From the sequence record OR258281.1: a DNA stretch of 64,000 nucleotides, one strand, 5' to 3'. The notes below the pieces were generated by a model that had not been told where the DNA came from, did no database searches, and saw nothing but the letters and a program-made list of their open reading frames with translations. How positions within the stretch are numbered: position 1 is the first letter of the stretch; each line of letters opens with the position of its first letter. Below, piece after piece: positions 10,863 through 51,758 of the stretch. The position numbers and the translations under genes were made by a program.

Positions 10863-11197
10863 TTAAAGAATTAGGCGATGATATTAATCCGTATATTTGC
10901 AATGATGCAAATCGATACGCATTGAAGTTCACCCATTATACAATTGACGGTACTAAGTACCGTGACTTACAAGAAAAACAGTTCGAAAAGCGTCAGCGTC
11001 TATTAAAAATGGCTGAAGCTGCTGGTGTAGTACTGAAAGAAACTAATGTACAACAAGTAATTGAACGTACTGAAGCCCGTCTTGAATATCTTCGTAATAA
11101 AGACACGTATGATGCTATTTTTGGTGAAGCATTGAAGTCACTTGAACCTCATGAAATCGCCCAATATCTTGAAAACCATATAAAAAATAAATCCTAA
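10856..11197 (+). CDS. Hypothetical protein
   Basis: 113-aa ORF overlapping the previous stop codon. Confidence 0.6.
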   Translation: MVIKELGDDINPYICNDANRYALKFTHYTIDGTKYRDLQEKQFEKRQRLLKMAEAAGVVLKETNVQQVIERTEARLEYLRNKDTYDAIFGEALKSLEPHEIAQYLENHIKNKS

Positions 11198-11268
11198 ATA
11201 ATTATGAAGTACTTCGTAATGTACTTTAATAGTACAAAGTACTTCATATTCTATAATTTAATTTAGGA
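11192..11268 (+). promoter_or_regulatory. Late promoter CTAAATA inside an SD-sequestering hairpin
   Basis: TCCTAAAT (11192-11199) pairs with ATTTAGGA (11261-11268); inner stem tatgaagtactt/aagtacttcata. Confidence 0.6.
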
Positions 11269-11276
11269 GAATTTGT

Positions 11277-11531
11277 ATGCTTAGTTTACGTGAAAGATTA
11301 GCTCAAGGCGTTGTTGATTTCTCAGAGAAAGTAGTAGATGTTCCAAAGAAATCAGAATTTTTAGGTTTGATTACTGAAGATGGTTATTGTGATTACAATG
11401 TACCTGAAGAAGATAAATCATACATTGAAAAGGATAATACAAAGGCAATGAGAATGCAAAGTAGTACACGTGCTCGGAAGCATCGCCAAGAACTCAGAAA
11501 ATTCAGAACATCTGGAAATTCTGGTCATTAA
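11277..11531 (+). CDS. Hypothetical protein, probably monocistronic and late
   Basis: AGGAGA Shine-Dalgarno; basic C-terminus; flanked by a late motif and a terminator. Confidence 0.65.
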   Translation: MLSLRERLAQGVVDFSEKVVDVPKKSEFLGLITEDGYCDYNVPEEDKSYIEKDNTKAMRMQSSTRARKHRQELRKFRTSGNSGH

Positions 11532-11534
11532 TTT

Positions 11535-11559
11535 AAAGGGACTCTTAACGAGTCCTTTT
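11535..11559 (+). terminator. Rho-independent terminator
   Basis: aagggactc-ttaac-gagtccttt followed by T. Confidence 0.75.
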
Positions 11560-11576
11560 ATTTTGGAGAAACAAAT

Positions 11577-11759
11577 ATGATGTTTTGGATCATCTGCGGG
11601 TTGATTATATACGCAAGTACTTTAGTAATGGTAAATCGTAAAATGGGTACTTCGGTTCCTATGAATGATGAAAGTCTATTGTTGATGGTTACTTTTGCAG
11701 TACTTGGTCCAATTTCAATCGTACTAGGAAGTATGATATTAAATGATTTCAATAATTGA
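11577..11759 (+). CDS. Small two-TM membrane protein
   Basis: GGAGA Shine-Dalgarno; two hydrophobic segments. Confidence 0.55.
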   Translation: MMFWIICGLIIYASTLVMVNRKMGTSVPMNDESLLLMVTFAVLGPISIVLGSMILNDFNN

Positions 11760-12201
11760 AGGTGACCTATTCGACTTCGTTAAAAGTTCTGAAGATAAGA
11801 CTATCATTATTGCTCATGGTTGCAATGCACAGGGTAAAATGAGAACAGGTTTTGCTAAAGTACTAAGAGATAAAAACGAAAACGTATTTAAAACATACAA
11901 AAACTCCGGTCACAAATTAGGTACTGCATCGTTCTATGAACTTGAACCTAATGTATTTGTGGCTAACTGCGTAACTCAGGAATTCTATGGTTACGATGGT
12001 AAGAAATATACCTCATATGATGCTGTCCACGACAGTTTCACTGAGTTACAGAAGTTTATAGACCAATTTGATACAGAAGTTTTATTATATTTCCCAAAAC
12101 TAGGTGCAGTACTTGGTGGTGGGAACAATAATGTAATAAAAACCATTATTGATGAAGTCATTGATGACAAAGTAACAAAAATACAATTTATAAAGGAATA
12201 A
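11743..12201 (+). CDS. Macrodomain (ADP-ribose binding or hydrolysing) protein
   Basis: IIEGDLF, IAHGCNAQGKMRTGFA, VANCVTQ and FPKLGAVLGGG motifs. Confidence 0.85.
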   Translation: MISIIEGDLFDFVKSSEDKTIIIAHGCNAQGKMRTGFAKVLRDKNENVFKTYKNSGHKLGTASFYELEPNVFVANCVTQEFYGYDGKKYTSYDAVHDSFTELQKFIDQFDTEVLLYFPKLGAVLGGGNNNVIKTIIDEVIDDKVTKIQFIKE

Positions 12202-12205
12202 TATA

Positions 12206-12505
12206 ATGGCAACTGCAAAAATTCTAGTAATCAACAGTATCGGTCCAGTAGTAGTAGAACTGGTTAAAGAAGAAAGTGATAAGTTCCTGGTACGTAATCC
12301 AGTTCAGCTTTCTCCAGCAGGCGAAGGACAAATGTCTTTCAACCCACTACTTGATTTTATGGTACAAGACGATGAAGTGCATGAAATTCTAAAGTCAAGC
12401 GTTTCTGTTGTCGTTAATCCAAATCCACAACTTGGAGAAGCATATCTGAAAGCAATGAATCCTAACGCAATCATCATGCCTCCTGAGAAAAAATTCATCG
12501 TTTAA
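12206..12505 (+). CDS. Hypothetical protein (small beta-rich fold)
   Basis: 99-aa ORF with AAGGA Shine-Dalgarno. Confidence 0.65.
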   Translation: MATAKILVINSIGPVVVELVKEESDKFLVRNPVQLSPAGEGQMSFNPLLDFMVQDDEVHEILKSSVSVVVNPNPQLGEAYLKAMNPNAIIMPPEKKFIV

Positions 12506-12507
12506 GG

Positions 12508-12536
12508 TTGCATTAGGAGCCGCGAAAAGGTAATAT
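12508..12536 (+). promoter_or_regulatory. Possible sigma70-like promoter
   Basis: TTGCAT-N17-TAATAT with the same -35 as at 2718; lies very close to the next GTG. Confidence 0.3.
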
Positions 12537-12540
12537 ATCT

Positions 12541-12831
12541 GTGAAAAGAAAGTACTATCCTACACCGGAACAGGCACTTACTATCCTTGAGGAAAATTTA
12601 CATGCTAACTTTATCGTAGATAGCATGTATGATATTCCGTTTGTTTATCCTTGTGACCAGACCTGTCATTTCCATTTTGATGTGATGGATATAGTTACCA
12701 CATCCGATCATGATTATGGTAAACGATTGGAAATGGTCAAAGACGAATGGGATAAAGAAGCAATCGAAGATTTTAAGATCCATTTCTACAAATACAAACA
12801 ACGTCATATCGATTGGGAATCTAACTACTAA
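12541..12831 (+). CDS. Hypothetical protein
   Basis: 96-aa ORF with a GTG start; the start is uncertain. Confidence 0.55.
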   Translation: MKRKYYPTPEQALTILEENLHANFIVDSMYDIPFVYPCDQTCHFHFDVMDIVTTSDHDYGKRLEMVKDEWDKEAIEDFKIHFYKYKQRHIDWESNY

Positions 12832-12832
12832 T

Positions 12833-13231
12833 ATGAAAACTCAACTACCAGAAGAAACACTGCAAGTAGTAATCGTCCGTAAAGATTCAAAACTGTCACA
12901 AGCTGGTTTGGCTCTTAGTATTTCACGTGCTAGTATTGAACTGCGTGATAAGTACGATCCTACTCATAAAGACTATGTTGGTCGTTATGAAGAAGATTTC
13001 TTTAAGAAAGTAATGAACCAATGGATTGCAGAAGGTCGTACTCAGGAATATTATGAGGTTGATGACTTTAACGATCTGCTTGAAATTGCGTTCCAGTGTT
13101 CGATGGAATCAGTACCTTCTAGCTTCATTACAAAAGAAGAACAAGACACTGTACATTGTTTAGTGCTTGGACCATTCGATAAGTACCGTCTGGAAGACCT
13201 TGTTCAGTACGCTAAGTACATTCCAGTATAA
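12833..13231 (+). CDS. Peptidyl-tRNA hydrolase II (Pth2)-like protein with degenerate catalytic motifs
   Basis: QVVIVRKDSKLS, W(IAE)G, EVDDFNDLLE and HCLVLGP follow the Pth2 pattern; start moved to the ATG right after the upstream stop. Confidence 0.6.
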   Translation: MKTQLPEETLQVVIVRKDSKLSQAGLALSISRASIELRDKYDPTHKDYVGRYEEDFFKKVMNQWIAEGRTQEYYEVDDFNDLLEIAFQCSMESVPSSFITKEEQDTVHCLVLGPFDKYRLEDLVQYAKYIPV

Positions 13232-13239
13232 TACATTTT

Positions 13240-13280
13240 AATCCTCTAAATATGTTATAATCATAACTGTTTAGAGGATT
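13240..13280 (+). promoter_or_regulatory. Late promoter CTAAATA inside an SD-sequestering hairpin
   Basis: AATCCTCTAAA (13240-13250) pairs perfectly with TTTAGAGGATT (13270-13280). Confidence 0.75.
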
Positions 13281-13286
13281 TTTTTT

Positions 13287-14057
13287 ATGTACGAAGATGA
13301 TAATTCTTCAGTGGATTACCGTGAAGAACTTAAAGGTACTATACAGACCCTTTTAGGCGGTGGAACCGTTGATGTTGAAGTAACTGATGAACAATACGAA
13401 CAAGCAATAACAAACGCAGTACGTAACTATCGTGCATGGTCTTCCAATGCACAGGAAGAAGCTTTCTTGCACATGAAGATGTATGAAAGCGAATCAGTAT
13501 ATACTCTCCCTCGCGAAGTCAGCAAAGTACAAAAGATATATCGCCGTGGTAATGGTGTTGTATCTGGTTCTGGTGCTACTGTTGACCCATTCAGCCTTTC
13601 TTATAGCAATACCTACATGTTAAGTGCAGTGCGTGGTAGTACTGGCGGTGGACTATTAACATATGACCTGTATCATCAATTTGATGAAACTGTTGCCCGT
13701 ATGTTTGGTCGAGATATTATTTTTAATTTCAATCCAGTAACCAAAAAACTTTCACTGCAACGTGATATTCGTGGTGAAGAAGAAGTACTATTACATGTGT
13801 ATCAGACTAAACCTGAAGGATTACTATTTTTAGATGATAGTATATATCCATGGATCAGAGATTGGTCTTTATCCGAAGCCATGTTAATGCTTGGAAGAAC
13901 ACGTGGTAAATATGGTACTATTGCTGGTCCACAAGGTTCAATTACGTTAGATGGTGAATCACTAAAACAAGAAGCACTGCAAATGCAGGAACGTTTAAAA
14001 GAAGATTTAAAACGTTTCCGCGATGGTGGTACTCCTTATGGATTTATTATCGGTTAA
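13287..14057 (+). CDS. Neck protein (T4 gp13-like)
   Basis: LGGGTVDVEVTDEQ...WIRDWSLS...LGRTRGKYGTIAGPQGSITLDGESLKQEA pattern of gp13-like necks. Confidence 0.75.
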   Translation: MYEDDNSSVDYREELKGTIQTLLGGGTVDVEVTDEQYEQAITNAVRNYRAWSSNAQEEAFLHMKMYESESVYTLPREVSKVQKIYRRGNGVVSGSGATVDPFSLSYSNTYMLSAVRGSTGGGLLTYDLYHQFDETVARMFGRDIIFNFNPVTKKLSLQRDIRGEEEVLLHVYQTKPEGLLFLDDSIYPWIRDWSLSEAMLMLGRTRGKYGTIAGPQGSITLDGESLKQEALQMQERLKEDLKRFRDGGTPYGFIIG

Positions 14058-14099
14058 TTACTAAATACCATAACAAAGGTAACATGTTATGGTGTTTAT

Positions 14100-14351
14100 A
14101 TGGAATATGTAAAATACAAAGCCTATCTAGGTGTTGATACATTATTCGACGTAAGTGACGCCGATGAACTATTAAACTCAATGTGTATACTAATAGATTC
14201 AGTTGAGAAAGAACATATAGAAAGTACTTTCGATATTGTTGCTGAATATATTAATCACACTCCTTTCTACTATGCACACGTTTGCATACCGAAATGGTCA
14301 GAAAGTTTGCTCTTTATAAAATTTCCTGAGTATGAATGGAAGATAGAATGA
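14100..14351 (+). CDS. Hypothetical protein
   Basis: 83-aa ORF followed by a terminator. Confidence 0.5.
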   Translation: MEYVKYKAYLGVDTLFDVSDADELLNSMCILIDSVEKEHIESTFDIVAEYINHTPFYYAHVCIPKWSESLLFIKFPEYEWKIE

Positions 14352-14360
14352 AACGTAAAT

Positions 14361-14391
14361 AGGGAAGTACTGTAATGGTACTTCCCTTTTT
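14361..14391 (+). terminator. Rho-independent terminator
   Basis: agggaagtac-tgtaatg-gtacttccct followed by a T-run. Confidence 0.85.
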
Positions 14392-14415
14392 GTATATGGA
14401 AATATGGAGAATTAC

Positions 14416-15102
14416 ATGGAACGTAAAATTATTGCAATTAATGGAACAATTGGGTCAGGAAAAGATACCTTCGCAAAAACGTTTATTACTAACGGTTTTA
14501 CACGAATGTCATTTGCAGAAACACTAAAAGATGCAGTTGCTGCAATATTTGGCTGGGATCGTGAAATGCTTGAAGGTAGTACTGAAGAATCAAGAAAGAT
14601 TCGTGAAAGTGTTGATGAATTCTGGAGTGCTGAACTTGGGTATGAAATAACCCCACGCTATGTTTTACAACACTTAGGTACTGATATACTCCGTGAGTAT
14701 TTTTGTGATGATCTATGGATTCTTAGTCTTAAGCGTAAACTACTTCAGACTAAAGGGAATGTAATTATAACTGACTGTCGTTTCCCTAATGAAGTAGAAA
14801 TGCTTCGTAAAATGAATGCAACTATTATTGAGGTACAACGAGTACTACCAGTATGGTATGAAGATGCGGTGTGGTATAACAATTTCATTGAAGAAAAATA
14901 TGAAGAAATTGCAAAACAAAATTATTATGATGACAGCGAAATACAAATGAAGCTTGAGTGTTATATGCCAGCTTCATTACACCACATACATAAATCTGAA
15001 TATTCTTGGGTTGGTATGAATCATCCAGACTATATTGTACAGAATACAGATGGAATAGAAGAACTACAACAGAAGGCGTTGGACATTATCACTAAGATTT
15101 AA
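14416..15102 (+). CDS. Deoxynucleoside monophosphate kinase (T4 gp1-like)
   Basis: P-loop GTIGSGKD, SFAETLK, TPRYVLQHLGT and ITDCRFPNE; start set by GGAGA spacing. Confidence 0.85.
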   Translation: MERKIIAINGTIGSGKDTFAKTFITNGFTRMSFAETLKDAVAAIFGWDREMLEGSTEESRKIRESVDEFWSAELGYEITPRYVLQHLGTDILREYFCDDLWILSLKRKLLQTKGNVIITDCRFPNEVEMLRKMNATIIEVQRVLPVWYEDAVWYNNFIEEKYEEIAKQNYYDDSEIQMKLECYMPASLHHIHKSEYSWVGMNHPDYIVQNTDGIEELQQKALDIITKI

Positions 15103-15124
15103 CGTTTTCTATATATACATTTTG

Positions 15125-15185
15125 ATCCTCCAATAAATAGAAGTATACGAATATTCGATATACCATTAAACCAAATTTGGAGGAT
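15125..15185 (+). promoter_or_regulatory. Late promoter ATAAATA next to an anti-SD arm
   Basis: ATCCTCCAA (15125-15133) pairs with TTGGAGGAT (15177-15185); ATAAATA at 15133-15139. Confidence 0.75.
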
Positions 15186-15189
15186 TTAA

Positions 15190-17826
15190 ATGGCTGACTT
15201 ACTATCTCCCGGTGTAAGCGTTAATTTTACTGATGATTCAATCAGTACTGCTTCAAGTGCCGGTACAGTGCCTCTATTTTTTATTGCTACCGCTCAGGAT
15301 AAAGTAATTTCTAATAGTAGTACAATCGCATCTGGTACTACTGCTTCTAACGCTGGCAAGCTTATTACCGTAACATCACAAAAAAATGTTTTAGAAACCT
15401 TTGGCTCACCAATCTTCCAGAAAGATGCAACTGGTGCTGTTGTCCAAGGTGATGAATTAAATGAATATGGTCTACATGGACTATATAGCTATATGGGTAT
15501 GGCAAACCGTGCATATGTATTACGTGCGGGTATTGACTTAGCTCAACTACAACCTACTGGCGTAGAACCAACTGGCCCGGTATCTAACGGTACTCTATGG
15601 CTAGATCTAAAATCAAGCCAAGTAGAAGCATATGTTGCCAAAGTTGCAAACCCAACTTCTTTCTATGATTGGACTTTAACTCCAGTAACTTTAGTAAGTG
15701 CTGAAACACTAGCTGCTGTTGATACTAGTCTATTCAACCTAAATGATCTAGTTATCCGTGTAGTACCAAGTACTGGTCAGATGCTAGTATATATGATGAC
15801 TGCTAATGGTCTAGCACAACAGGATAGTGTACTATCTCCAATCAATAAAGTACCATCTGCTGGTAAAGTTTGGATTCGTAGTGGTTATACTCAGAGTGGT
15901 ACTTCTTACTTCGGTACTCGCTTCGTAATGAGTCGCTACCGTAGTACTACTGGTGTTTGGGCTGATGTTCCAGTTCATACTGGCAATAACTTCTATGAAG
16001 TTGAAGCACAAACCGGTAAAATGGATAATACTTACGCTGCTGCTATTTTTGATGCTGACAGTAACAGTTTTAGTCTTTTCATGAACAGTGAATCTAACCC
16101 TACGGTAAGTGCCGCTGGTACTCCACTTGGTGGAACTGCAACGGCTGCTGGTTACTTAACTATTAAGTTCCTAAACAAATCTATCAAAGTACAAGTTCTT
16201 GCACTTAATGATACTATCAATGCTAGTACTATTATTGGTAAACTTGGTTTAGTTGCTGACCTAGTAAATGCTGGCTTCACGTTCACTGGTACTAGTACTC
16301 TAACTATTACTAACAAGAAAGGCTATAGCTTCTCTGTATCACAAAGTGGTGTTGCTTCTTTCAGTACTTCTGAAATTGCACAACTAAGTACAGATGGTAC
16401 TATCAACTATGATATGATCAGTGCTGGTAACTTAGCCGCTTCTGTAAGTGTTCCAACTGGTGCTGCTTCTGAAGGTACTTACTGGTTTAACTTCAGTAAT
16501 AGTGATTCTCTAACTGTAACACTATATACTGCTGATGTTGTTAACGACCAATGGGTAGTTGTTCCAGAAAACAACAAGTATATCCAGCTTGATGAACCTA
16601 ATGCAGACCGTGATTTTTGGGTTAAACCACTATCTCAGGGTATTGAAGGTTATCAGTTCTTCCGTAATGTAAGTGGTGCATGGAGTGAACTAGATCAAAC
16701 TGACCAGAGTACTCTTAAAGGTCTAGTATTTGAAGACTTCTCTAAAGATGTACCTGCTGCTGATCTATTCATGAATGGCACTCTTGCAGTAGATATGGGT
16801 AGAACCGAAGGTGTAGTACTTAAACGTTCTGGTGGTGTTTGGAATGTTGTAAGTGGTACTGCTCTAAATGGTGCAGGTCTATTTGGTCGTCATGCACAGC
16901 GTCAGGTTATTGTAGAGTCCATTGCAAGTGCTATTGTTTCTAACGATTCAATTCGTGCTGAATCTGTAGACTTCAACCTAATTTGTGCTCCAGGTTATGC
17001 TGAACTACTAGATGAAATGGTAACACTAAACACTGATCGTAAGGAAACTGCTTTCATTGTTACTGATGTACCAGCACGTCTAACTCCAAGTGCAACTGCT
17101 GTATCTGCATGGGCTACGAATGCAAACAACGCTGCAAGTAATGGTGATGTAGGTCGTACTACTGCTTATGACTTTGCTGCTCAGTATATGGGTTGGTGCT
17201 TAGGTACTAACGTTGATGGTTCTGAAATTGCTATCCCTGGTTCTTCTGTAGCTATGCGTACCTATGCATACAGTGACAGTGTTAGTTATGTATGGTTCCC
17301 GCCAGCAGGTACACAACGCGGTGTAGTAAGTAATGCTGCAAGTGTTGGTTATATTAATGAAGAAGGTGAATACGAGCCAGTTGTTTACAACCAAGGCCAG
17401 CGTGACACCATGTACACTAATAATATTAACCCAATTGCTATGCGTCCTAACCGTGGACTACTTGTATATGGTGATAAAACTCTAGCTGCTGAAAGTACTT
17501 CTGCAATTAGTCGTGTGAACGTTGCTCGTCTAGTAGTTTATATTCGTAAGCAAATTGCACTACTAGCTGAACCGTTCCTATTCCAGCTAAACACTGCAAG
17601 TACACGTCAGGCATTTACTTCAGTTGTTACCAGTTTCCTAGCTGAAATTGCACAACTAGATGGTCTAACTGACTTCTTAGTAGTATGTGATGAGTCTAAC
17701 AACACCGTTACACGTATTAATCGTGAGGAATTATGGATGGATATTGCGATTGTTCCAACACGTTCAATCAACTTCATTTATGTTCCGATTCGTTTAGTTA
17801 ACGATGCAAGTTCATTAAGTTCTTAA
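15190..17826 (+). CDS. Contractile tail sheath protein (gp18-like)
   Basis: LLSPGVSV N-terminus; C-terminal WFPPAG, LYT/YTNNINPI, YGDKT, SRVNVARL and FLVVCDESNNT motifs. Confidence 0.95.
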   Translation: MADLLSPGVSVNFTDDSISTASSAGTVPLFFIATAQDKVISNSSTIASGTTASNAGKLITVTSQKNVLETFGSPIFQKDATGAVVQGDELNEYGLHGLYSYMGMANRAYVLRAGIDLAQLQPTGVEPTGPVSNGTLWLDLKSSQVEAYVAKVANPTSFYDWTLTPVTLVSAETLAAVDTSLFNLNDLVIRVVPSTGQMLVYMMTANGLAQQDSVLSPINKVPSAGKVWIRSGYTQSGTSYFGTRFVMSRYRSTTGVWADVPVHTGNNFYEVEAQTGKMDNTYAAAIFDADSNSFSLFMNSESNPTVSAAGTPLGGTATAAGYLTIKFLNKSIKVQVLALNDTINASTIIGKLGLVADLVNAGFTFTGTSTLTITNKKGYSFSVSQSGVASFSTSEIAQLSTDGTINYDMISAGNLAASVSVPTGAASEGTYWFNFSNSDSLTVTLYTADVVNDQWVVVPENNKYIQLDEPNADRDFWVKPLSQGIEGYQFFRNVSGAWSELDQTDQSTLKGLVFEDFSKDVPAADLFMNGTLAVDMGRTEGVVLKRSGGVWNVVSGTALNGAGLFGRHAQRQVIVESIASAIVSNDSIRAESVDFNLICAPGYAELLDEMVTLNTDRKETAFIVTDVPARLTPSATAVSAWATNANNAASNGDVGRTTAYDFAAQYMGWCLGTNVDGSEIAIPGSSVAMRTYAYSDSVSYVWFPPAGTQRGVVSNAASVGYINEEGEYEPVVYNQGQRDTMYTNNINPIAMRPNRGLLVYGDKTLAAESTSAISRVNVARLVVYIRKQIALLAEPFLFQLNTASTRQAFTSVVTSFLAEIAQLDGLTDFLVVCDESNNTVTRINREELWMDIAIVPTRSINFIYVPIRLVNDASSLSS

Positions 17827-17830
17827 AATT

Positions 17831-17854
17831 AAGCACCCTACGGGGTGCTTTTTT
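17831..17854 (+). terminator. Rho-independent terminator
   Basis: aagcaccc-tacg-gggtgctt followed by a T-run. Confidence 0.85.
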
Positions 17855-17876
17855 GTTGTAACTTTGAAATTAATTC

Positions 17877-17920
17877 TCTCCTAAATAAATAGTATAAAAG
17901 AATATTCTTTAATTAGGAGA
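17877..17920 (+). promoter_or_regulatory. Late promoter (CTAAATAAATA) inside an SD-sequestering hairpin
   Basis: TCTCCTAA (17877-17884) pairs with TTAGGAGA (17913-17920). Confidence 0.7.
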
Positions 17921-17926
17921 ATGACA

Positions 17927-18616
17927 ATGAGTAGTGTTCTAGATAAATTTGGTGTTCCAATTCCTGGTGGCGGTCGCTCATCAATGAAACAACCAAAGCC
18001 AAAAAATAAATTCCGTATTTTGCTATTCGGATTTGGTGCTGCAAATGATGGTACTTTCATTACCATTGATACCAATAACGTTGGTGCACCTAATCAGTCT
18101 TTCGCAAAAACTGAAGTACATAGTTATAACTCAGTTTCTAACTTCAAAGGTAAGTATACTTGGGAAGAAATTGAAGTTGCGTTCCGTGATACCGTTGGTT
18201 CACAGCCGCTAAAAGCTCTATATAACCAGATGCGTAGAGAATTTAACCCTTATTCTCAGGAATCTCGTAAATCTGCAAGTCAGTATAAATTTGAAATGTG
18301 GATTCAGGTTCTTGATGGTTCTAACAGTGATGAAACAACTAACCTTTATCAAGGTACTCTAAGTACTTGGGTATGTCAGGGTTGCTTTATCGTTAGTACT
18401 AACTTCGGTGAATGGGATTATTCTAGTTCTGAATCGCAGTTGGTAACTTTCTCAGTACAACCAGACTATTGTGTACTGCTTAATGAAAATGGTGATGCTA
18501 TGGGTGATGAAGTTTCCGGTAACGGTACTCCAGAAACTGCAAATGGTATGACTGTTAGTCAGCATCAAATCGATTCCAATACCCTCAAGGATCAAAACTT
18601 TTTCCGTGGTCAATAA
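17927..18616 (+). CDS. Tail tube protein (gp19-like), paralogue 1
   Basis: Directly after the sheath; KNKFRI, KGKYTWEEIEVAFRDT and GEWDYSSS...VTFSVQPDY; second ATG fits SD spacing. Confidence 0.8.
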   Translation: MSSVLDKFGVPIPGGGRSSMKQPKPKNKFRILLFGFGAANDGTFITIDTNNVGAPNQSFAKTEVHSYNSVSNFKGKYTWEEIEVAFRDTVGSQPLKALYNQMRREFNPYSQESRKSASQYKFEMWIQVLDGSNSDETTNLYQGTLSTWVCQGCFIVSTNFGEWDYSSSESQLVTFSVQPDYCVLLNENGDAMGDEVSGNGTPETANGMTVSQHQIDSNTLKDQNFFRGQ

Positions 18617-18639
18617 TGCAATGTTATTGGCATCAATTG

Positions 18640-18671
18640 AAGCCCTGCACAATGCGGGGCTTTTCTTTTTT
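18640..18671 (+). terminator. Rho-independent terminator
   Basis: aagccctgca-caa-tgcggggctt followed by a T-rich tail. Confidence 0.75.
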
Positions 18672-18672
18672 G

Positions 18673-18679
18673 CTAAATA
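18673..18679 (+). promoter_or_regulatory. Late promoter motif CTAAATA
   Basis: Between the terminator and the second tube gene. Confidence 0.6.
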
Positions 18680-18714
18680 ATAATATATGTAGTTAAGATA
18701 AAAGGAATTATTAT

Positions 18715-19488: not shown

Positions 19489-19497
19489 GGATATGAC

Positions 19498-21583: not shown

Positions 21584-21609
21584 ATTAAAATACTGATTGG
21601 AGTTTTATA

Positions 21610-22158: not shown

Positions 22159-22161
22159 TGT

Positions 22162-44146: not shown

Positions 44147-44186
44147 GTTCCCTCCGTTGGATTAATCGGAATAGCTTTATTTGATG

Positions 44187-44193
44187 TATTTAT
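44187..44193 (-). promoter_or_regulatory. Late promoter motif ATAAATA
   Basis: TATTTAT on the + strand, about 40 nt upstream of the start. Confidence 0.6.
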
Positions 44194-44226
44194 CCATAAA
44201 GTACCTAATATTATAAGGATAGAAAT

Positions 44227-44259
44227 AAAAAAGCCCTGAATATATTATTCAGGGCTTTT
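44227..44259 (-). terminator. Rho-independent terminator
   Basis: aaaaaagccctgaata-tat-tattcagggctttt. Confidence 0.85.
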
Positions 44260-44261
44260 CA

Positions 44262-47200
44262 TTAATCTAATTTTTCTACAACCATTGTAAAACCTTGATA
44301 AGTATTGAGTATTGAACTAGACATATATGAACAGCATATGTTTTGTCCTGCGGCAACACTTACAATTTCGCAAAAAGAAACGTTACTAATTGTATTGACA
44401 GATAATGCATCGATGCGGTATGCTGCACCACTTATTGAAGTTCCTGCACCTAAACCTACACCAAACTGATGACCACCGTTAATCAAACCGGCAGTTATCA
44501 TCGCAGTACAAGTTACTTTATATAATCCAGCAACTGCAACACTGACTCCAGTTGTATTACCAGTATATAACGAGGTATTACCGGTTACTGTCATTGCAGA
44601 GTTAGCGGTCATTGGACCAAATGCAAGTAATGATGCTTTGTTTACAGTATTATAACAGCTTACACGAGCAGCGTTATTCACACCACCCCAAGTACCATTA
44701 GCCTTAAGCATATGGTTGTGACTGTCAGCAATAGATGGTGCAGGTACTAAGCCAATTGACCCTGCTGCACTTGAAGTACTTCCAGTAAAGGTTCCACTGA
44801 ATGTATCAAGTTTAGATTTATCTGCTGCACTCATCAAACCAGATGTAGTGCTATTAGCATTATACATAGCAGTCTGTGGTTGCCAGATTGCAGTATTAGT
44901 GCCGTTAGCTATAAGGATATGTCCTGCTACTGGTGAACCACTGACGCTTATACCGTTGATTCTAGACACTACTGGAGCGGTTGCAGTACCACTTAGATCT
45001 CCAGATAAAGTAATGTTACCTGATGTGGTTGTGGTGGCTGGAACGTTAGTTACAATATTACCTGAACCTAGTAAACTTGTACCATTGATGCTTTTTATAT
45101 TAGTACCAGATATCAAAGTACTTTGCTTAGTATCAATCTGAGAACTTAATATAACACCTTGATTGGCACTTAATGGTCTTGAACTTGAAACGGTAGTTAA
45201 ATTATCAACAATATCTGAAATATTAACTTTATTAGACAAAATTACACTAATAACCGCACCCTGATTAGCACTCAATGGCTTATTTGGGTTTGTACTGGTT
45301 AAACTATCAATAATATCTGAAGTATTAACTTTTGTTCCAATTAATGTATTAAGAACCGTACCTTGTCTAGCACTAAGAGGGAAGATAATACTGGTACTTG
45401 TTAATGAATCAACAATATCAGCAGTATTAATCTTAGTACCGATTTTATCATTAAGAACTTTACCTTGATTTGCACTGAGTGCCTGATTGGTAGTTGTAAG
45501 TGTTACACTATCAATAATATCACTTACATTCAGCTTAGCTTGTACTTGATTGTTAAGAATCCTACCTTGATTTGCACTAAGTGGAGCACTAATTGATATA
45601 CTTGTCAGGTTATCAGTAACATCCGATATATTAACTTTGTTACTTAACGCAGTATTAATAACACTACCCTGATTAGCACTCAAAGGAGCAACAGTACTGG
45701 TACTTGTTAAAGAATCAACAATATCAGCAGTGTTAATCTTTGTATTAATTGAAGCTTGAAGTATTTTACCTTGTTTAGCACTTAGTGGAACCGTTGAATT
45801 TGAGCTTAACAGGTTATCAACAATATCTGAAGTACTAACTTTAGTGCTAATTAAACCGTTTAGAACGTTACCCTGATGTGCACTCAATGCTTTATTTGTA
45901 CTTACATCAATAAGGTTATCTACAACATCAGAAATATTAAGCTTAGTTCCTACCATTGAGCTTAAGATATATCCCTGATTTGCACTTAGAACCGAAGATC
46001 CCGATGTACTGGTAAGATTATCAACAATACTACTTGTTCCGATCTTCTGATCAAGTAAATTGCCGATTATGTAACCTTGATTAGCACTAAGAGCTTTTGA
46101 TGGTGAAGTATTCAATAAGCTATCAACAACATCAGTACTATTAAGTTTTAACTGAATATTAGAGCTTAATACTCTACCTTGATTGGCACTTAATGGCACA
46201 GATGTGCTTGTACTATTAAGATTATCAACTATATCATCAGAATTAGACTTATTAGCAATTAGTCCAGCTAAAATACGACCCTGATTTGCACTTAAAGGTT
46301 TGTTTGCACTATTATCAGATAAGTTATCCACAATATCAGATGTGCTTGCTTTAGTTGCAATCAAATCATTAAGTAAAGTACCCTGATTTGCACTTAGTGG
46401 TAAAACCCCTGAAGTACTGCCAATTGTATCAACAACATCAAGTGGAGTAATTACAGATTTGTATGTTCCGTCACCAAAGAATGCTTTGTTGTTATCACCA
46501 GCTTTAGGAGAAGGTACGTTTCCTGCAATCCCCGGTGAAGTTAAAGTACTTCCTACCATAATAGCAGTAGCTTGTGGTATTAGCGTAAAATTATTAAGAT
46601 TAGTTGGGGTACTTGGGGTATCAGTATTACAAAATAGTTCATCACCTGCATTATAAGTCTGACTACCAATTTTACCAGAAGCATTTGCTTTCCAAAAGTC
46701 ACCGCGAACTGAACCAGCTAATGCGGTTAGTGTATTCGGCAGAATGCCTCTGAAAGAACCTTTCTGTAGAGTATTGAAGTTTTTAAGCTTAGTAACATCA
46801 ATATTTGCAACATCAGCAGTAATATTAAATGTGTTATCAAATGCTAAACCAGTACCAATACTTACTGAAACTTTACCTTGTGAGTCAACATTTAAACCAT
46901 TGTGTGGTATAATAGTACCAGCAACAGTTGACGTGGCTAGTGGATTTATATTTGTTTCAATACTAAAGTAATCAGTTGAATTAATGGTTGTGACTGTACC
47001 GGTAGTCCTAGTACAAACTATTTTATCACCAATATTAAAGCTAATCCCATCAAGTACACCAGCAGTTTCTGCTTTCCAGTATGAATTTCTTACTGCATTA
47101 TTAAATTGTGATACACCTGCACCAAAATTAATAGAACCCATGAATGTACCATTCATTAATTGGTCTACGTTATTAAGCGAAAGCACATCTAAACGTTCAT

Positions 47201-48986
47201 TTTGAGGTAAATTACGTAAAGATTCAGCAATAACAGAAATATCATTTGTAGTAAGCACTTGATATTCGTCAAAATTTCTATATTTTAGTGAAATATACGG
47301 TTTCTGACCATTATTACTAAGTACTTTTACTGGAATGCCATCTGAATCTAGTACTTGATAGTGCATCGTATCGGTCTCATTGCTCCATAATGGGCAATCA
47401 AACTGAAATTCATATGATTCGCCAGAAGTCATAGAAACATTAGGTACTTTGTAGTCAATTAATGATGTATCAGTCGCTTCATTTGCTACTAAAATTCGTA
47501 TTTCACCGGTATAATCTTCGGCGGGAACCGCTGTAATAGAAAATACTGCTGAATTACTTGATGTATCATATTTTCCTTCAAAATCTACAGTATTTGGTCC
47601 AACTGAGCCATTTACTTCAAGATTATCCATTTCAGAATAAATCTTTGACATTGGTAAGCCAGCAACCGTACCATCATTACTTAGTTTTTGAAGAACAGGA
47701 GACAATGACATACCATTAGTTGTATTGACCCATGTTACGTTATTAATAAATGCAGCATTAAGTGTATCACCTAATGTTAAGAAATTTGTGTTGACTGCAT
47801 CAGTGCTAGATTCACCAACAGTCATGATATTACCACTTATAACAAGGTCAGTACTGTTTATAGTATTGACATTTATTTCAGCAGTTGTAATTGTGCCAGA
47901 ACTAACAATATTCCCGGTAGTAATTGAACCGGTAGTTGTAATAGTATCTGATTGTATGTCTTTGGTTGTTAAAGTTCCAGTACTGATGACGTCTTTTGCG
48001 TTGATCATTCTTGTACTGTTTATGACCTGACTATTAATAACGCCAGAACTGTGAAGATCCTTAGTTATAATGGCTTGGTCTGTTGTAATATTAGAAGCAC
48101 TCACCATTCCTGTGCTTGTAATATTTTTAGTTTTGATACTTTCTGTACTGTTTAAGGAATTTGTGGTTATTACTCCAGTGCTTACTAGACTAGAAGTATT
48201 GATGCCATTGGTGTTGTTAATAACATTAGACTCAATAGTATTAGAGCTTATGACTCCAGAACTACTAACATCCTTTGTAATAATACTGTTGTTATTATTA
48301 ATGGTATCAGAATTGATAGTACCTGTACTTGTAAGGTTCACTGCGTGAACTTCACTAGCTGTGGTAACATTTGATGTAATTGTACCAGTACTTACAACAT
48401 CTTTTGTTTTAATTCCATTCGTATTTGTTATAGTGTCAGAAGTAATCGTACCTGTACTAGATAGATCCTTCGTCTGAATGGTTTGTGAAGATATTGAACC
48501 TGTACTAGATAAATCCTTGGTGTTAATCACATTAGAATTAATCATTGTATCGGAGGTAATAGTTCCTGTACTGACTAAATCCGTAGTGTTAATTTTATTT
48601 GAAGTGACACTAACAGTACTTACTAAGTCTTTAGTGTTAATTTTATTAGAATTTATAATATGGTCAGAGGATATTGTACCTGTACTCGTTAAATCAGTGG
48701 TACTTATTTTTGTAGTACTAATATCTTCCGTATTTACTTTATTGAATGTGGCCTCAGTGTTATCTGAACCAATCAAGTCACCATCAACATTTATATTACC
48801 AGATATTGCTATAGTGGAGGCAGAAATATCCTGCCCCACGTCAACCTTAGTAAATGTTGCATTGGTAAAACTTGCATCACCAGTAGCAGTGATGTTATTA
48901 TCTATCACCGCATTACCCTGTACTTTCATATCCTGTTGTACAGTGGTTGTTCCTTGAATGCTTACATCAGTTTTTATAGAATGCAT
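44262..48986 (-). CDS. Long tail fibre-like protein (1574 aa)
   Basis: N-terminal STGTITS repeats, a central domain, 13 LSANQG repeats and TNIKSINGTSLLGSGNI. Confidence 0.7.
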   Translation of the reverse strand: MHSIKTDVSIQGTTTVQQDMKVQGNAVIDNNITATGDASFTNATFTKVDVGQDISASTIAISGNINVDGDLIGSDNTEATFNKVNTEDISTTKISTTDLTSTGTISSDHIINSNKINTKDLVSTVSVTSNKINTTDLVSTGTITSDTMINSNVINTKDLSSTGSISSQTIQTKDLSSTGTITSDTITNTNGIKTKDVVSTGTITSNVTTASEVHAVNLTSTGTINSDTINNNNSIITKDVSSSGVISSNTIESNVINNTNGINTSSLVSTGVITTNSLNSTESIKTKNITSTGMVSASNITTDQAIITKDLHSSGVINSQVINSTRMINAKDVISTGTLTTKDIQSDTITTTGSITTGNIVSSGTITTAEINVNTINSTDLVISGNIMTVGESSTDAVNTNFLTLGDTLNAAFINNVTWVNTTNGMSLSPVLQKLSNDGTVAGLPMSKIYSEMDNLEVNGSVGPNTVDFEGKYDTSSNSAVFSITAVPAEDYTGEIRILVANEATDTSLIDYKVPNVSMTSGESYEFQFDCPLWSNETDTMHYQVLDSDGIPVKVLSNNGQKPYISLKYRNFDEYQVLTTNDISVIAESLRNLPQNERLDVLSLNNVDQLMNGTFMGSINFGAGVSQFNNAVRNSYWKAETAGVLDGISFNIGDKIVCTRTTGTVTTINSTDYFSIETNINPLATSTVAGTIIPHNGLNVDSQGKVSVSIGTGLAFDNTFNITADVANIDVTKLKNFNTLQKGSFRGILPNTLTALAGSVRGDFWKANASGKIGSQTYNAGDELFCNTDTPSTPTNLNNFTLIPQATAIMVGSTLTSPGIAGNVPSPKAGDNNKAFFGDGTYKSVITPLDVVDTIGSTSGVLPLSANQGTLLNDLIATKASTSDIVDNLSDNSANKPLSANQGRILAGLIANKSNSDDIVDNLNSTSTSVPLSANQGRVLSSNIQLKLNSTDVVDSLLNTSPSKALSANQGYIIGNLLDQKIGTSSIVDNLTSTSGSSVLSANQGYILSSMVGTKLNISDVVDNLIDVSTNKALSAHQGNVLNGLISTKVSTSDIVDNLLSSNSTVPLSAKQGKILQASINTKINTADIVDSLTSTSTVAPLSANQGSVINTALSNKVNISDVTDNLTSISISAPLSANQGRILNNQVQAKLNVSDIIDSVTLTTTNQALSANQGKVLNDKIGTKINTADIVDSLTSTSIIFPLSARQGTVLNTLIGTKVNTSDIIDSLTSTNPNKPLSANQGAVISVILSNKVNISDIVDNLTTVSSSRPLSANQGVILSSQIDTKQSTLISGTNIKSINGTSLLGSGNIVTNVPATTTTSGNITLSGDLSGTATAPVVSRINGISVSGSPVAGHILIANGTNTAIWQPQTAMYNANSTTSGLMSAADKSKLDTFSGTFTGSTSSAAGSIGLVPAPSIADSHNHMLKANGTWGGVNNAARVSCYNTVNKASLLAFGPMTANSAMTVTGNTSLYTGNTTGVSVAVAGLYKVTCTAMITAGLINGGHQFGVGLGAGTSISGAAYRIDALSVNTISNVSFCEIVSVAAGQNICCSYMSSSILNTYQGFTMVVEKLD
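45126..46436 (-). repeat. 13 tandem 34-aa (102-bp) IVDxLxSTSxxxPLSANQGxxL repeats
   Basis: Counted in the provided translation. Confidence 0.9.
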
Positions 48987-49000
48987 TTACTATCTCTCCA

Positions 49001-49873
49001 TTATTTGCCGCTTATTACAACTTTTCCACTAAAAGTAATATTACTTTTCAAGGTAATATTTCCAGAAGTATCAATAGCAGTTTCTAGGCCAACAATGATA
49101 AATGGTGAAGCACTTGAATTTCCGTCAACTGTATTTTGATATACTGTGATGAATAACGGCCCTGTTGCCTGATTATGAGTACTTGCAGGAATACTGAACT
49201 CATAATGATCACCTACGGTACTCCAATCTGACTTATTAATTGGATTACTATATGGGGTACTCATTGTGGTTGCTCCTATGATAAGAATATTAACACTTGA
49301 TGTTGGCTGGACGTTGGTACTTACAGTTATATTACCGAATCCATCAACAACTACATCATCCATATTAACTGAACCATCAACATCTTGTAGCTGAACAACA
49401 ATGTTATCACCACGTTCGTGTGTAGTTGCAGATAATTGGTACTTATATACAGAATTACTTAAAGTCCAATCACTAGGTTTAACTGTATATGTACTTACAT
49501 AATCAGAATCCTGTGTTGGTGGGGTAGTACTATAAGGTTTCCATATACCTTCGTCTTTGAAATAAATTCCAAGAATACTTGTTGCATCAATTTTGAAATA
49601 CACATTAGAATCTTCGCCTAAACTTGGCAGCGGGGTATCAATTCCATGAAGAATTGTACTATTACCGCCACCGCTCCCATTATGAGAGTTAAAATAAGCT
49701 AAGTTAACCGCGTGTGTATCGTCAGTTGGGGTTGCAACACTGATAGGTACTAAATCACTTTCGGTATAGTTCATTAGGCGTAAAGCACCGTTTTGGAAAA
49801 CAAGCTTCGCACCACCTTTACCTATAACGAATGACTTTTTCATGGTTCCTTCTAAATTAGAAAAAACTGCCAT
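49001..49873 (-). CDS. Virion structural protein with duplicated SDW beta-domains
   Basis: VATPTDDTHAVNLAY fibre-type motif; two SDW...Y...I/L..STH repeats. Confidence 0.65.
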   Translation of the reverse strand: MAVFSNLEGTMKKSFVIGKGGAKLVFQNGALRLMNYTESDLVPISVATPTDDTHAVNLAYFNSHNGSGGGNSTILHGIDTPLPSLGEDSNVYFKIDATSILGIYFKDEGIWKPYSTTPPTQDSDYVSTYTVKPSDWTLSNSVYKYQLSATTHERGDNIVVQLQDVDGSVNMDDVVVDGFGNITVSTNVQPTSSVNILIIGATTMSTPYSNPINKSDWSTVGDHYEFSIPASTHNQATGPLFITVYQNTVDGNSSASPFIIVGLETAIDTSGNITLKSNITFSGKVVISGK

Positions 49874-49905
49874 CGATACATCTCCTAAAAAGGTTTCGTT
49901 TGATG

Positions 49906-49912
49906 TATTTAT
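49906..49912 (-). promoter_or_regulatory. Late promoter motif ATAAATA
   Basis: Divergent pair with 49948-49954. Confidence 0.6.
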
Positions 49913-49947
49913 TCCATATTAGGCGTAAAATACCATGTAAAATAGAC

Positions 49948-49954
49948 ATAAATA
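49948..49954 (+). promoter_or_regulatory. Late promoter motif ATAAATA
   Basis: 28 nt upstream of the ART-like gene. Confidence 0.6.
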
Positions 49955-49982
49955 TTATATAATTTTCAAAGGAATATAGAAT

Positions 49983-50576
49983 ATGAAGACATTAGGCGAA
50001 ATGGCAAGATCTATTGGATCAGTTATTGTTGAAGGTAATATTGGTACGTTCTATCATGGAAGTACTCATAAAATCAGTACATTTAATGATGAGTTTGTTG
50101 GTTCAGGTAATGATCAACTAGGTCCGGGGATTTATTTCAGTTCAAGTCTGAAAGATGCCCTTGGTTATTCAGATAATAATGGATATATCTATGAAGTGCA
50201 GATTAACTTACGAAATGACTTAGATATGAAATCTAAGGTTAATCCACGATTAGTAAAAGCACTTATTCAAGCATCACCTGACGATTATGCATGGCAGAAT
50301 TGGTCCGAAAATAAGAAGCAAGGTATCGAATTAGGTTACCGAAATACTCTTGAAATTTCTGATAATATGCTTGAAGCAATTGATAACATCAATGGTGATT
50401 GGTACAGACAATATGAGAAAGATTTTGTACGACAGCTTACAAAATTAGGATTTGACGGTAGTATTCATCGAAATGTTAATGGGTCCGATAGTACTTGGGT
50501 TGTTGTTTATAATCCACAAGCTATTACCCTAGTTAAAGTACATTTAGCAAGTAATTTGATTAAAAATGGAGCCTGA
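49983..50576 (+). CDS. ADP-ribosyltransferase-like protein (ART-PolyVal type)
   Basis: FYHGS, GPGIYFS, ALGY, GYIYEV, GFDG and VVYNP follow the ART-PolyVal pattern. Confidence 0.6.
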   Translation: MKTLGEMARSIGSVIVEGNIGTFYHGSTHKISTFNDEFVGSGNDQLGPGIYFSSSLKDALGYSDNNGYIYEVQINLRNDLDMKSKVNPRLVKALIQASPDDYAWQNWSENKKQGIELGYRNTLEISDNMLEAIDNINGDWYRQYEKDFVRQLTKLGFDGSIHRNVNGSDSTWVVVYNPQAITLVKVHLASNLIKNGA

Positions 50577-50590
50577 TGGCTCCATTTTTA
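50562..50590. terminator. Bidirectional terminator
   Basis: aaaaatggagcc-tgat-ggctccattttt, overlapping the ART stop. Confidence 0.8.
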
Positions 50591-51661
50591 TTAGATAGGA
50601 ATATTAGAGGTAGGAAGTTGTTTACCAATGGTTACTTTGATCTTTACGATACCAGTATCACTGTTGAGAGGGGCATAATCAAAAACTGCACTTACGATTT
50701 CATCTTTAGTACTTGGTTCATGATTAATTTCATTTACGATGTAACGACTTTGACGATTCAGATCAAAATAATCTTTTTCAGCAATAATAACTGAACCAGT
50801 ATCATCTTGTACTGTACCACCAAATCGAATTTCCATATCTACTACATTGGTATTAAGTGGAGTTGCAATATTAACATCAATATTGGTAACCACATAACCT
50901 TCAGGACAAGTACCAATTACAATAAGGGTATTTGCTAGACTGAAATCAACAGTGTTTGATATGATATACTCAGCCGCTGGACCAACTGGACCTTGAATAC
51001 CAACACCCTGTGGACCAGTGAACTGATCACCAGCACTCCATAGTAAAGCACCAGTACCATCTTCATATACGTAATATAATTTGCCTTCATCAGTCTTAAG
51101 GAAAGTATATCCATCATACAGGCCCGTAGTTGCTGGTAATGTAGTACCACGATCATTAATACGGAATTGACCCTGTTCTCCACGGTCACCCTTCCATTGA
51201 TAACCAGTACTCCACTGTAAAGAAACCTGTTTAATATAAACCATACCAGTATCGGTATTAAGGAAAGTATATCCTACTTCTAATCCTTGTGGATCTGGAA
51301 GAGTTGTCCCACTTCCATCGATATTGAATGGGTCACCTTTATCGCCCTTGCCATATTCGGCACTAACCCAAGTAACAGGAGAAACACCAGGTAAAGAGGT
51401 TTTGAAATACAATGTAACTACACCATTAGCATAACTCTGGTATACAAAACCTTGTGGTTCTGCAACGTACATAGTACCATCTGGAATTAAATTCCCTTGT
51501 GCATCAGGTTTAAAGTCTTTACCATCAGCACCAACTACTTTACCAATAATTTCAGCGGTATCATCACTATATGTGACTACTAAATTACCGTCAGAATCAA
51601 TCTTTGCAGATTTAATACTCTTGTTACTTGAACAGGTAGAGCTATTGAATGAAATAGCCAT
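50591..51661 (-). CDS. Virion structural protein with short collagen-like and duplicated GTTLP modules
   Basis: GKGDKGDP, GDRGEQGQ and GPQGVGIQGPVGP; two GTTLP..G....YTFL.TD.G..Y repeats. Confidence 0.65.
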   Translation of the reverse strand: MAISFNSSTCSSNKSIKSAKIDSDGNLVVTYSDDTAEIIGKVVGADGKDFKPDAQGNLIPDGTMYVAEPQGFVYQSYANGVVTLYFKTSLPGVSPVTWVSAEYGKGDKGDPFNIDGSGTTLPDPQGLEVGYTFLNTDTGMVYIKQVSLQWSTGYQWKGDRGEQGQFRINDRGTTLPATTGLYDGYTFLKTDEGKLYYVYEDGTGALLWSAGDQFTGPQGVGIQGPVGPAAEYIISNTVDFSLANTLIVIGTCPEGYVVTNIDVNIATPLNTNVVDMEIRFGGTVQDDTGSVIIAEKDYFDLNRQSRYIVNEINHEPSTKDEIVSAVFDYAPLNSDTGIVKIKVTIGKQLPTSNIPI

Positions 51662-51694
51662 ATTTATTTTTCTCCTAAAATGTTCAATTTAAGG

Positions 51695-51701
51695 TATTTA
51701 T
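51695..51701 (-). promoter_or_regulatory. Late promoter motif ATAAATA
   Basis: TATTTAT on the + strand, upstream of the minus-strand start. Confidence 0.6.
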
Positions 51702-51724
51702 CTGGTATTCTGTACAGACGGACT

Positions 51725-51758
51725 CCTTCTATAAATAATATAAAGTTCAAATAGAAGG
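51725..51758 (+). promoter_or_regulatory. Late promoter TATAAATA inside an SD-sequestering hairpin
   Basis: CCTTCTAT (51725-51732) pairs with ATAGAAGG (51751-51758); TATAAATA at 51730-51737. Confidence 0.7.

Follow-up and report, generated by a model that had tools for sequence, protein, structure and literature searches.

Predicted late promoters nested in Shine-Dalgarno-masking hairpins at structural genes of the jumbo phage XaC1

Introduction

In bacteriophage T4, a helix sequesters the Shine-Dalgarno (SD) sequence or AUG of e, soc, 49 and I-TevI, and the late promoter encodes the 5' strand of that helix (PMC3014915). Here we describe hairpins of a similar layout in a window of 64,000 nucleotides (nt) from record OR258281.1, which corresponds with 100% identity to positions 124001-188000 of the genome of Xanthomonas phage XaC1. 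This jumbo myovirus has a genome of 348,967 base pairs (bp), and the RaK2/GAP32/CBB/121Q-like phages are the closest relatives sequenced, sharing 62-68% identity in the sheath protein. For CBB and GAP32, ATAAATA was proposed earlier as the late promoter of structural genes by analogy with TATAAATA of T4, and a TGAAAC-N-TATACT motif of early/middle type was reported (PMC5259590). Hairpins and stem-loops are absent from the text of that CBB genome paper, and the XaC1 genome paper treats neither promoters nor hairpins. Our literature search found no transcriptome study of these genera and no description of the hairpins discussed here.

A preliminary description of the window had proposed that late promoters at five genes are built into hairpins that hide the SD in read-through RNA, and had named soc and e as T4 precedents. 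That precedent is sound and also takes in 49 and I-TevI (PMC3014915). The genome-wide search, folding and comparison with related phages reported below suggest to us that late-promoter-in-hairpin control of the T4 e/soc/49/I-TevI type operates in XaC1, a reading to which we give a probability of roughly 0.6. Support for it is good at the neck gene, the sheath gene and XaC1_271, moderate at one tail tube gene and weak at XaC1_264; XaC1_305 is probably not a site of this kind.

Results and Discussion

Anti-SD Arms Coincide with Predicted Late Promoters

The XaC1 genome encodes a gp55-like late sigma factor outside the window (XaC1_320; phrog_12791, E = 4.5e-136; also phrog_234), and an (A/C)TAAATA box, whose promoter role is predicted, lies 28-82 nt 5' of late/structural genes. 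Together these features point to late transcription of the T4 type in XaC1, in which the sigma factor would act with the box at about -10. The five genes singled out in the preliminary description are XaC1_264, a conserved open reading frame (ORF) of 84 amino acids; XaC1_270, the neck protein or head-tail adaptor Ad2; XaC1_273, the tail sheath; XaC1_274, a tail tube paralogue (paralogue 1, hereafter tube 1); and XaC1_305, a virion structural protein annotated as structural via its orthologue. The arm pairs claimed for these genes are all present as perfect Watson-Crick helices of 8, 11, 9, 8 and 8 bp, in that order. Every 5' arm overlaps or adjoins TAAATA, and every 3' arm covers a purine-rich SD, 5-11 nt before the ATG (Table 1). 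All five sites lie on the + strand as described, four of them behind co-directional + strand genes and the fifth, at XaC1_305, in a divergent arrangement.

A mechanical search of all annotated gene starts in the window for SD-directed helices revealed a sixth case beyond the earlier list, the small conserved ORF XaC1_271. At the roughly 60 other starts the best SD-directed helix reached 4-7 bp, the exceptions being XaC1_271 itself and one AT-only palindrome within coding sequence. The same search bore out the claim that the minus-strand late promoters lack anti-SD arms. No Rfam family reaches its gathering score anywhere in the window.

Table 1. Coordinates of the leaders, promoters and hairpins discussed, with the folding-derived probability that the SD is unpaired. 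Locations are window positions unless marked as genome positions.
Feature	Location	Strand	5' arm	3' arm	Late box	ATG	SD unpaired, read-through RNA	SD unpaired, late RNA	Remarks
XaC1_264 leader	11192..11268	+	TCCTAAAT 11192-11199 (outer arm)	ATTTAGGA 11261-11268	11195-11200		0.33	0.38	Outer arm overlaps box and XaC1_263 stop codon
Neck (XaC1_270) leader hairpin	13240..13280	+	AATCCTCTAAA 13240-13250	TTTAGAGGATT 13270-13280	13247-13252	13287	0.00	0.31	5' arm contains box TAAATA; 3' arm contains SD AGAGGA, then T8
XaC1_271 leader	14062..14093	+	ACCATAACA 14067-14075	TGTTATGGT 14085-14093	14062-14067	14100	0.00	0.51	5' arm starts directly after box TAAATA; 3' arm covers SD-like GGTG
Sheath (XaC1_273) leader	15125..15185	+	ATCCTCCAA 15125-15133	TTGGAGGAT 15177-15185	15134-15139	15190	0.00	0.67	Arm adjoins box TAAATA; 3' arm covers SD GGAGGA
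Tube 1 (XaC1_274) leader	17877..17920	+	TCTCCTAA 17877-17884	TTAGGAGA 17913-17920	17882-17887 and 17886-17891	17927	0.01	0.82	Arm overlaps both boxes; canonical terminator 17831-17850 just 5'
XaC1_305 leader	51725..51758	+	CCTTCTAT 51725-51732	ATAGAAGG 51751-51758	51732-51737	51769	0.05	0.72	Arm adjoins box TAAATA
Early/middle-type promoters, TGAAAC-N15-19-TATACT	4302, 9698, 26293, 29266, 50941, 57333	+							Motif match in window
XaC1_37 (virion protein)	genome 16292-16345								SD in 3' arm at late box; stem within 10-15 bp range
XaC1_339 (tail fibre)	genome 221749-221789								SD in 3' arm at late box; stem within 10-15 bp range
XaC1_404	genome 270465-270500								13-bp stem containing GGAG, SD in 3' arm, then U6
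XaC1_223	genome ~112049-112083								Classical terminator hairpin and U-run; SD free downstream
XaC1_376	genome ~252225-252274								Classical terminator hairpin and U-run; SD free downstream

To place these helices against the background, the whole XaC1 genome was assembled and its genes were called with a simple script; of the 68 starts annotated in the window, the script recovers 60. Genome-wide, 56 intergenic regions carry the box 5' of a gene; an SD-directed helix of at least 8 bp is found in 17 of them (30%) versus 21 of 526 other starts (4%). If the 5' arm of such a helix must also touch the hexamer, 13 of the 56 regions remain, 6 of them among the 19 that fall within the window, against a null rate of 0.7% per region at pseudo-promoter positions in other upstream regions (binomial P = 3e-9 for the window and 1e-16 for the genome). 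When the 20 nt 5' of the hexamers were shuffled, such helices averaged 5.0 with a maximum of 7, and the observed 13 was never reached. Structure spanning the predicted start is likewise stronger at late promoters, with a median of -6.85 kcal/mol versus -2.9 at control positions (Mann-Whitney p = 2e-6). A general sequence bias 5' of the late box was considered as the source of the complementarity and ruled out, as inspection of the 56 late regions yielded no CCTC-like consensus.

That the complementarity arises by chance in AT-rich leaders, or as a by-product of promoter and SD preferences, is very improbable as a general account. It draws on XaC1_305, with a z-score of -1.1 and no conservation, and on XaC1_264, whose outer helix is not part of the consensus structure; moreover, the genome-wide background of about 4% for helices of at least 8 bp leads one to expect one or two among 56 regions. 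The promoter-touching helices (0.7% versus 6 of 19), the lack of a CCTC-like consensus and the covariation of the neck arms with the SD flanks speak against it. Chance is already refuted for the neck gene, the sheath gene and XaC1_271, and is viable only for XaC1_264 and XaC1_305.

The Neck Hairpin Is Maintained by Compensatory Changes

The core helix of the neck leader is extended in the minimum free energy (MFE) fold to a stem of 13+5 pairs at -18.3 kcal/mol (z = -6.4). For comparison, the neck-to-tube region was collected from 12 named phages and 19 IMG/VR loci, which gave 16-20 distinct leaders per gene; the IMG/VR loci were retrieved with a neck-protein alignment, and the sheath protein alone as query returned none. 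A helix of 8-17 bp that includes both box and SD is present in all 20 distinct neck leaders. The flanks of the SD core vary by lineage (GGATT, GGGGTAT, GGGGTGC, GGGGTAC, GGGGTT and GAGGTGC(TA)), and the 5' arms vary with them (AATCC, ATACCCC, GCACCCC, GTACCCC, AACCCC and (TA)GCACCTC, respectively).

A formal count on 12 sequences finds four pairs with compensatory changes and 84% pairing versus at most 59% for slid partners, with a covariation score that none of 500 shuffles matched. Among the 20 leaders, 44 of 60 positions beyond the SD core form Watson-Crick pairs versus 29.4 with shuffled partners (maximum 41 in 5000); since the leaders represent about five or six lineages, these counts cannot be taken as independent events. 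The Munch-like group has TATAAATA as its box, which led MAFFT to misplace these leaders by 2 nt, and the arms were instead anchored on the C/G core by script. These data support the notion that pairing at the neck leader is under selection, and the matched exchanges show compensatory evolution maintaining the putative device across at least five genera. In PA5oct and Atu_ph07, the TAAATA box is present with no arms at the neck or sheath genes; the predicted design is confined to the RaK2-like clade.

The neck stem also has the look of a terminator. In XaC1 it is stable and followed by U8, and at least four T follow the stem in most of the 20 relatives, RaK2 and Hallingskeid being exceptions. 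A pattern-based terminator scan did not call the hairpin, because of its long loop. One could therefore read the hairpins mainly as transcriptional insulators, that is, intrinsic terminators that late RNA escapes by way of the internal promoter, with SD masking incidental. Beyond the T-runs at the neck, this explanation can point to the 13-bp GGAG stem and U6 at XaC1_404 and to the terminators with a box inside at XaC1_223 and XaC1_376. We nevertheless consider it unlikely, given that no U-run follows the stems at the sheath gene, tube 1, XaC1_271, XaC1_264 or XaC1_305, nor the neck stems of RaK2 and Hallingskeid, that the sheath loop measures 43 nt, that a simple terminator scan called none of the five listed sites, and that each of these sites has its 3' arm centred on the SD.

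The Sheath and XaC1_271 Helices Are Conserved

The perfect 9-bp sheath helix has an MFE of -17.0 kcal/mol (z = -3.0). Of 16 distinct leaders, 15 retain its anti-SD arm, which always stops 1 nt ahead of the hexamer and is 91.7% paired. The helix hardly varies, with C-to-U changes that keep a G-U pair and one C-to-G break as the only differences. Between the end of the dNMP kinase gene and the arm are 23 nt, with no terminator among them. At XaC1_271, the helix is again a perfect 9 bp (MFE -14.9 kcal/mol, z = -4.35), and the hairpin is kept in 10 of 10 distinct leaders with 96% pairing and only G-U wobble variation. Neither gene has double compensatory changes, and for both of them covariation counts neither prove nor disprove the structure.

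The one-sided changes in the sheath and XaC1_271 arms preserve G-U pairs, and therefore fit pairing in the sense RNA rather than in DNA. This bears on the proposal that the inverted repeats act as DNA, either as sites for a dimeric late-gene regulator or as cruciforms. The repeats do include the promoter, and DsbA of T4 binds AT-rich sites that overlap late promoters (PMC2988020). Such a role is hardly probable when the arm sequences differ among genes and phages yet stay complementary, when the spacing between arms ranges from 9 to ~60 nt, and when the G-U-compatible changes would be A-C mismatches on the other strand.

Two further observations concern these leaders. The sheath leader between the arms (15140-15176) is unusually conserved and contains the palindrome CGAATATTCG; in the 121Q and RaK2 leaders the loop has changed and the stem CGA(A)/(U)UCG has not, a pattern suggestive of a small RNA hairpin within the sheath leader. 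A related palindrome, AAAGAATATTCTTT, is found at 17898-17911 in the tube 1 leader of XaC1. In the leader of the adjacent dNMP kinase gene (window 14361-14400 and orthologues), Mimasvirus- and Eneladusvirus-type relatives (L004, L023, L025, L027, L029-L032 and L034) have an upstream terminator whose 3' half and T-run (TTCCTTT) are complementary to the SD AAAGGAA. The best such helix in XaC1 is only 4 bp, and the complementarity may be a by-product of the T-run.

Late Transcripts Are Predicted to Expose the SD

The T4 late box (8 bp) sits at -13 to -6 (PMC2988020). With this geometry, the predicted late start lies 3' of the 5' arm, except at XaC1_271, where the predicted +1 (~14073) falls inside it. 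We compared the probability that the SD is unpaired in a 115-nt read-through RNA with that in an RNA beginning at the predicted +1 (Table 1). The predicted probability rises from at most 0.05 to 0.31-0.82 at five of the six window sites. Among 15 control late genes without arms the SD changes little, yet four of them rise by 0.2-0.4. The folding predicts that the SD would open only in transcripts begun at the late promoter. The earlier claim that read-through RNA hides the SD and late RNA frees it is accordingly upheld in folding at those five sites and fails at XaC1_264, where the SD is not reliably hidden in the longer context.

The mechanism that we propose concerns a subset of late genes situated behind co-directional genes, in which the box would lie within or beside the 5' strand of a hairpin and the 3' strand would hold the SD. 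RNA arriving from further upstream would carry both strands, fold and so hide the SD; at the neck gene, the stem and U-run would probably also terminate such RNA. RNA from the late promoter would start ~6 nt after the box and lack the 5' strand, which would leave the SD open and form no terminator. The outcome would be that expression of the cistron is tied to its own late promoter. In this scheme we infer the identity of the promoter, the +1 position, the read-through RNA and the effect on translation.

A different possibility is that the structures also form in late mRNAs, the true start lying 5' of or inside the arm, and that they tune translation or stability or bind a translational regulator. 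The +1 position is a prediction, and at XaC1_271 the arm begins right after the box, so that a shift of a few nt would retain part of it. The XaC1_264 leader has a conserved 5'-terminal hairpin, and the sheath leader is conserved well past the arms and includes the small CGAA/UUCG hairpin. We regard this possibility as quite improbable: five of the six arms are located within the box or 5' of it, where a start is impossible if the geometry is T4-like, and an SD-masking stem of -17 kcal/mol is ill-suited to strongly expressed genes such as the sheath gene.

Transcriptional Context

The early/middle-type matches in the window are 6 of 6 on the + strand, five of them canonical, and the genome has 44 on the + strand versus 10 on the minus strand. 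The less canonical match, at 50941, is located within XaC1_304 in antisense orientation, 5' of the XaC1_305 site. From the promoter at 9698, an operon extends uninterrupted by terminators as far as XaC1_264, behind which the first one is located. The minus-strand late genes, which have no arms, come after other late genes and terminators. In T4, early and middle transcription are of one polarity (PMC2988020); the + strand early/middle promoters and the arm-less minus-strand late genes therefore match the T4 polarity rule and fit a role in guarding against co-directional read-through. A scan for sigma-70-type promoters returned fewer matches than expected from shuffles and was not used.

Tube 1, XaC1_264 and XaC1_305

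The remaining three sites differ from the neck, sheath and XaC1_271 sites in how they fare among relatives. The preliminary description had the device at neck, sheath and tube genes alike: the neck helix is compensated and the sheath helix conserved, as is that of XaC1_271, and the tube 1 arm is unconserved and lineage-specific. The XaC1_264 outer helix and the XaC1_305 arm fail the tests of conservation.

At tube 1, the perfect 8-bp helix has an MFE of -13.8 kcal/mol (z = -3.15). RaK2 has a different 9-bp arm (ATTTCTCCA/TGGAGAAAT) that adjoins the box, and Hallingskeid has a 9-bp arm (CTCCAATTC/GAATTGGAG) located 16 nt 5' of the box, each matched to the phage's own SD. On this thin evidence it looks as though tube 1 arms may have been gained repeatedly.

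The XaC1_264 leader folds at -24.5 kcal/mol (z = -5.2); most of this stability is due to an inner hairpin (~11203-11247 in the MFE fold). The outer anti-SD helix is perfect only in XaC1; it is 7 bp in the closest relative (L024), and most relatives have merely CCTAAAT/ATTTGGG with wobble. The inner hairpin is conserved in 13 relatives, shows compensatory changes at 3 of 8 pairs, and occurs in the variants GAAGGAA/TTCCTTC, GAAGAAC/GTTCTTC and GAAGAC/GTCTTC. Its base coincides with the predicted late +1, give or take a few nt, and in the folding model it has the appearance of a stem-loop that would stabilise the late mRNA at its 5' end.

XaC1_305 lies at one of two divergent intergenic regions, 49874-49982 and 51662-51768, in which back-to-back late boxes serve oppositely oriented structural genes. 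In both regions, one gene's SD matches, as reverse complement, a stretch of the other gene's far leader.

Points Against T4-Type Control

Several results weigh against the control that we propose, some of them at single sites. At XaC1_305, the 8-bp helix has an MFE of -9.2 kcal/mol and 24 of 200 shuffles fold as well; CBB, 121Q, 7t3 and RaK2 lack the arm in their orthologous leaders and, like XaC1, have a divergent upstream gene. The XaC1_305 arm is probably fortuitous or XaC1-specific. At XaC1_264, the RNAalifold consensus consists of the inner hairpin and does not recover the outer helix, and ribosomes terminating at the XaC1_263 stop codon inside the arm would disturb the outer helix on read-through RNA. 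The tube 1 arm of XaC1 is absent in Mimasvirus, Eneladusvirus and Asteriusvirus, each lineage having its own arm or none. The conservation at the sheath gene comes without compensatory changes in a leader that is 78% identical as a whole across genera. The neck hairpin, with its T-run, may act mainly as a terminator, a role that the preliminary description did not consider.

Other points concern transcription. XaC1_271 sits behind the late neck gene and tube 1 behind a strong terminator, and early read-through is therefore not an obvious threat at either. No early/middle promoter was found directly 5' of the neck or dNMP kinase genes, so that read-through there is deduced from gene order alone. 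The +1 position is borrowed from T4 geometry. A search of public sequencing runs found none with XaC1 RNA, and no 5'-end or expression data were found for the relatives; for one 121Q-like locus, apparent RNA sets are probably DNA or wastewater metatranscriptome contigs and offer no 5' ends and no usable depth steps.

Predicted Nested Late Promoters Elsewhere in the Genome

The five sites listed at the outset belong to a wider pattern that takes in about 11 of the 56 late promoters. Outside the window there are five further nested late promoters, with z-scores of -5 to -7 (Table 1). At XaC1_223 and XaC1_376, the TAAATA box is in the terminator loop or 5' arm, and late transcripts starting inside these putative terminators would bypass them. 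A more general proposal is that these cases reflect a genome-wide insulation grammar of RaK2-like jumbo phages, in which about one-fifth of late promoters are nested in hairpins that would act on whatever RNA enters from upstream, and would mask the SD, terminate transcription, or do both in a composite terminator-promoter-ribosome-binding site (RBS) element. On this broader reading, which we put forward tentatively and hold to be somewhat doubtful, each cistron would be translated only from RNA of its own promoter, and late structural genes may be interleaved with early/middle genes on one strand.

A weaker candidate is XaC1_323, an endonuclease VII and homologue of T4 gene 49 on the minus strand. 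Here (L016:20930-20960) an AU-rich 8-bp stem (AATACTAT/ATAGTATT) overlaps the end of the late box and stops beside a weak SD; it is too weak to call.

The late boxes are also often preceded immediately 5' by AGTACT, as in gagtacTAAATA. This palindrome is 11.5-fold over-represented in XaC1 (1356 seen versus 118 expected; GTAC, 3941 versus 1123) and is by far the top 6-mer palindrome, occurring in all reading frames and in intergenic sequence throughout the genome at 70-178 per 25 kb, with the highest density near the left end. All RaK2-like relatives sampled (loci L003, L005, L007, L008, L010, L012, L020 and L024) show a 6-10-fold excess, and PA5oct (0 versus 3.9) and Atu_ph07 (1 versus 3.9) show none. 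A literature search found no paper mentioning an AGTACT excess. Four GC-rich palindromes, CCCGGG, CAGCTG, AGGCCT and AGCGCT, have 0 occurrences in the XaC1 genome versus 10-34 expected each, consistent with restriction-site avoidance.

Comparison with Known Systems

If the reading put forward here is right, core virion genes of distant and poorly studied 350-kb phages use a device that in T4 serves a few accessory genes, and this would explain how late genes come to lie directly downstream of same-strand metabolic genes. The reading also allows strong prediction of where late promoters and start sites lie in phages without transcript maps, and the composite terminator/promoter/RBS elements are possible compact insulators for phage engineering. 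What would be new is the conserved use of a known T4-type control in another phage group and not a new principle.

The likeness to T4 e, soc, 49 and I-TevI lies in a box of the TATAAATA type in or next to the 5' strand, the SD and/or AUG in the 3' strand, and a gp55-type sigma factor. If the T4 geometry holds, late RNA without the 5' strand would be a further shared feature. At the level of sequence, an SD within a stable 3' strand holds for the neck gene, the sheath gene, XaC1_271 and tube 1, and is marginal for XaC1_264 and XaC1_305. Unlike T4, XaC1 belongs to the RaK2/GAP32/121Q-like clade and is known from sequence and folding alone, and its targets are a neck adaptor, the tail sheath and a small ORF versus the lysis, decoration, resolvase and homing-endonuclease genes of T4.

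Intrinsic terminators offer a second comparison. The neck and XaC1_404 stems are GC-rich at the base and followed by a U-run, and XaC1_223 and XaC1_376 have the classical shape. In contrast to ordinary intrinsic terminators, these elements hold a promoter within the stem-loop, the 3' arm at the neck gene and XaC1_404 doubles as the SD, and the loops are long with internal pairing. Promoter-early stem-loop (PeSL) cassettes of RB49/phi1-type T4 relatives also place a promoter, an early one, in an intergenic stem-loop, and have been discussed as recombination or shuffling modules. The XaC1 elements differ from PeSL cassettes in that their promoters are late and their 3' arm is the gene's own SD.

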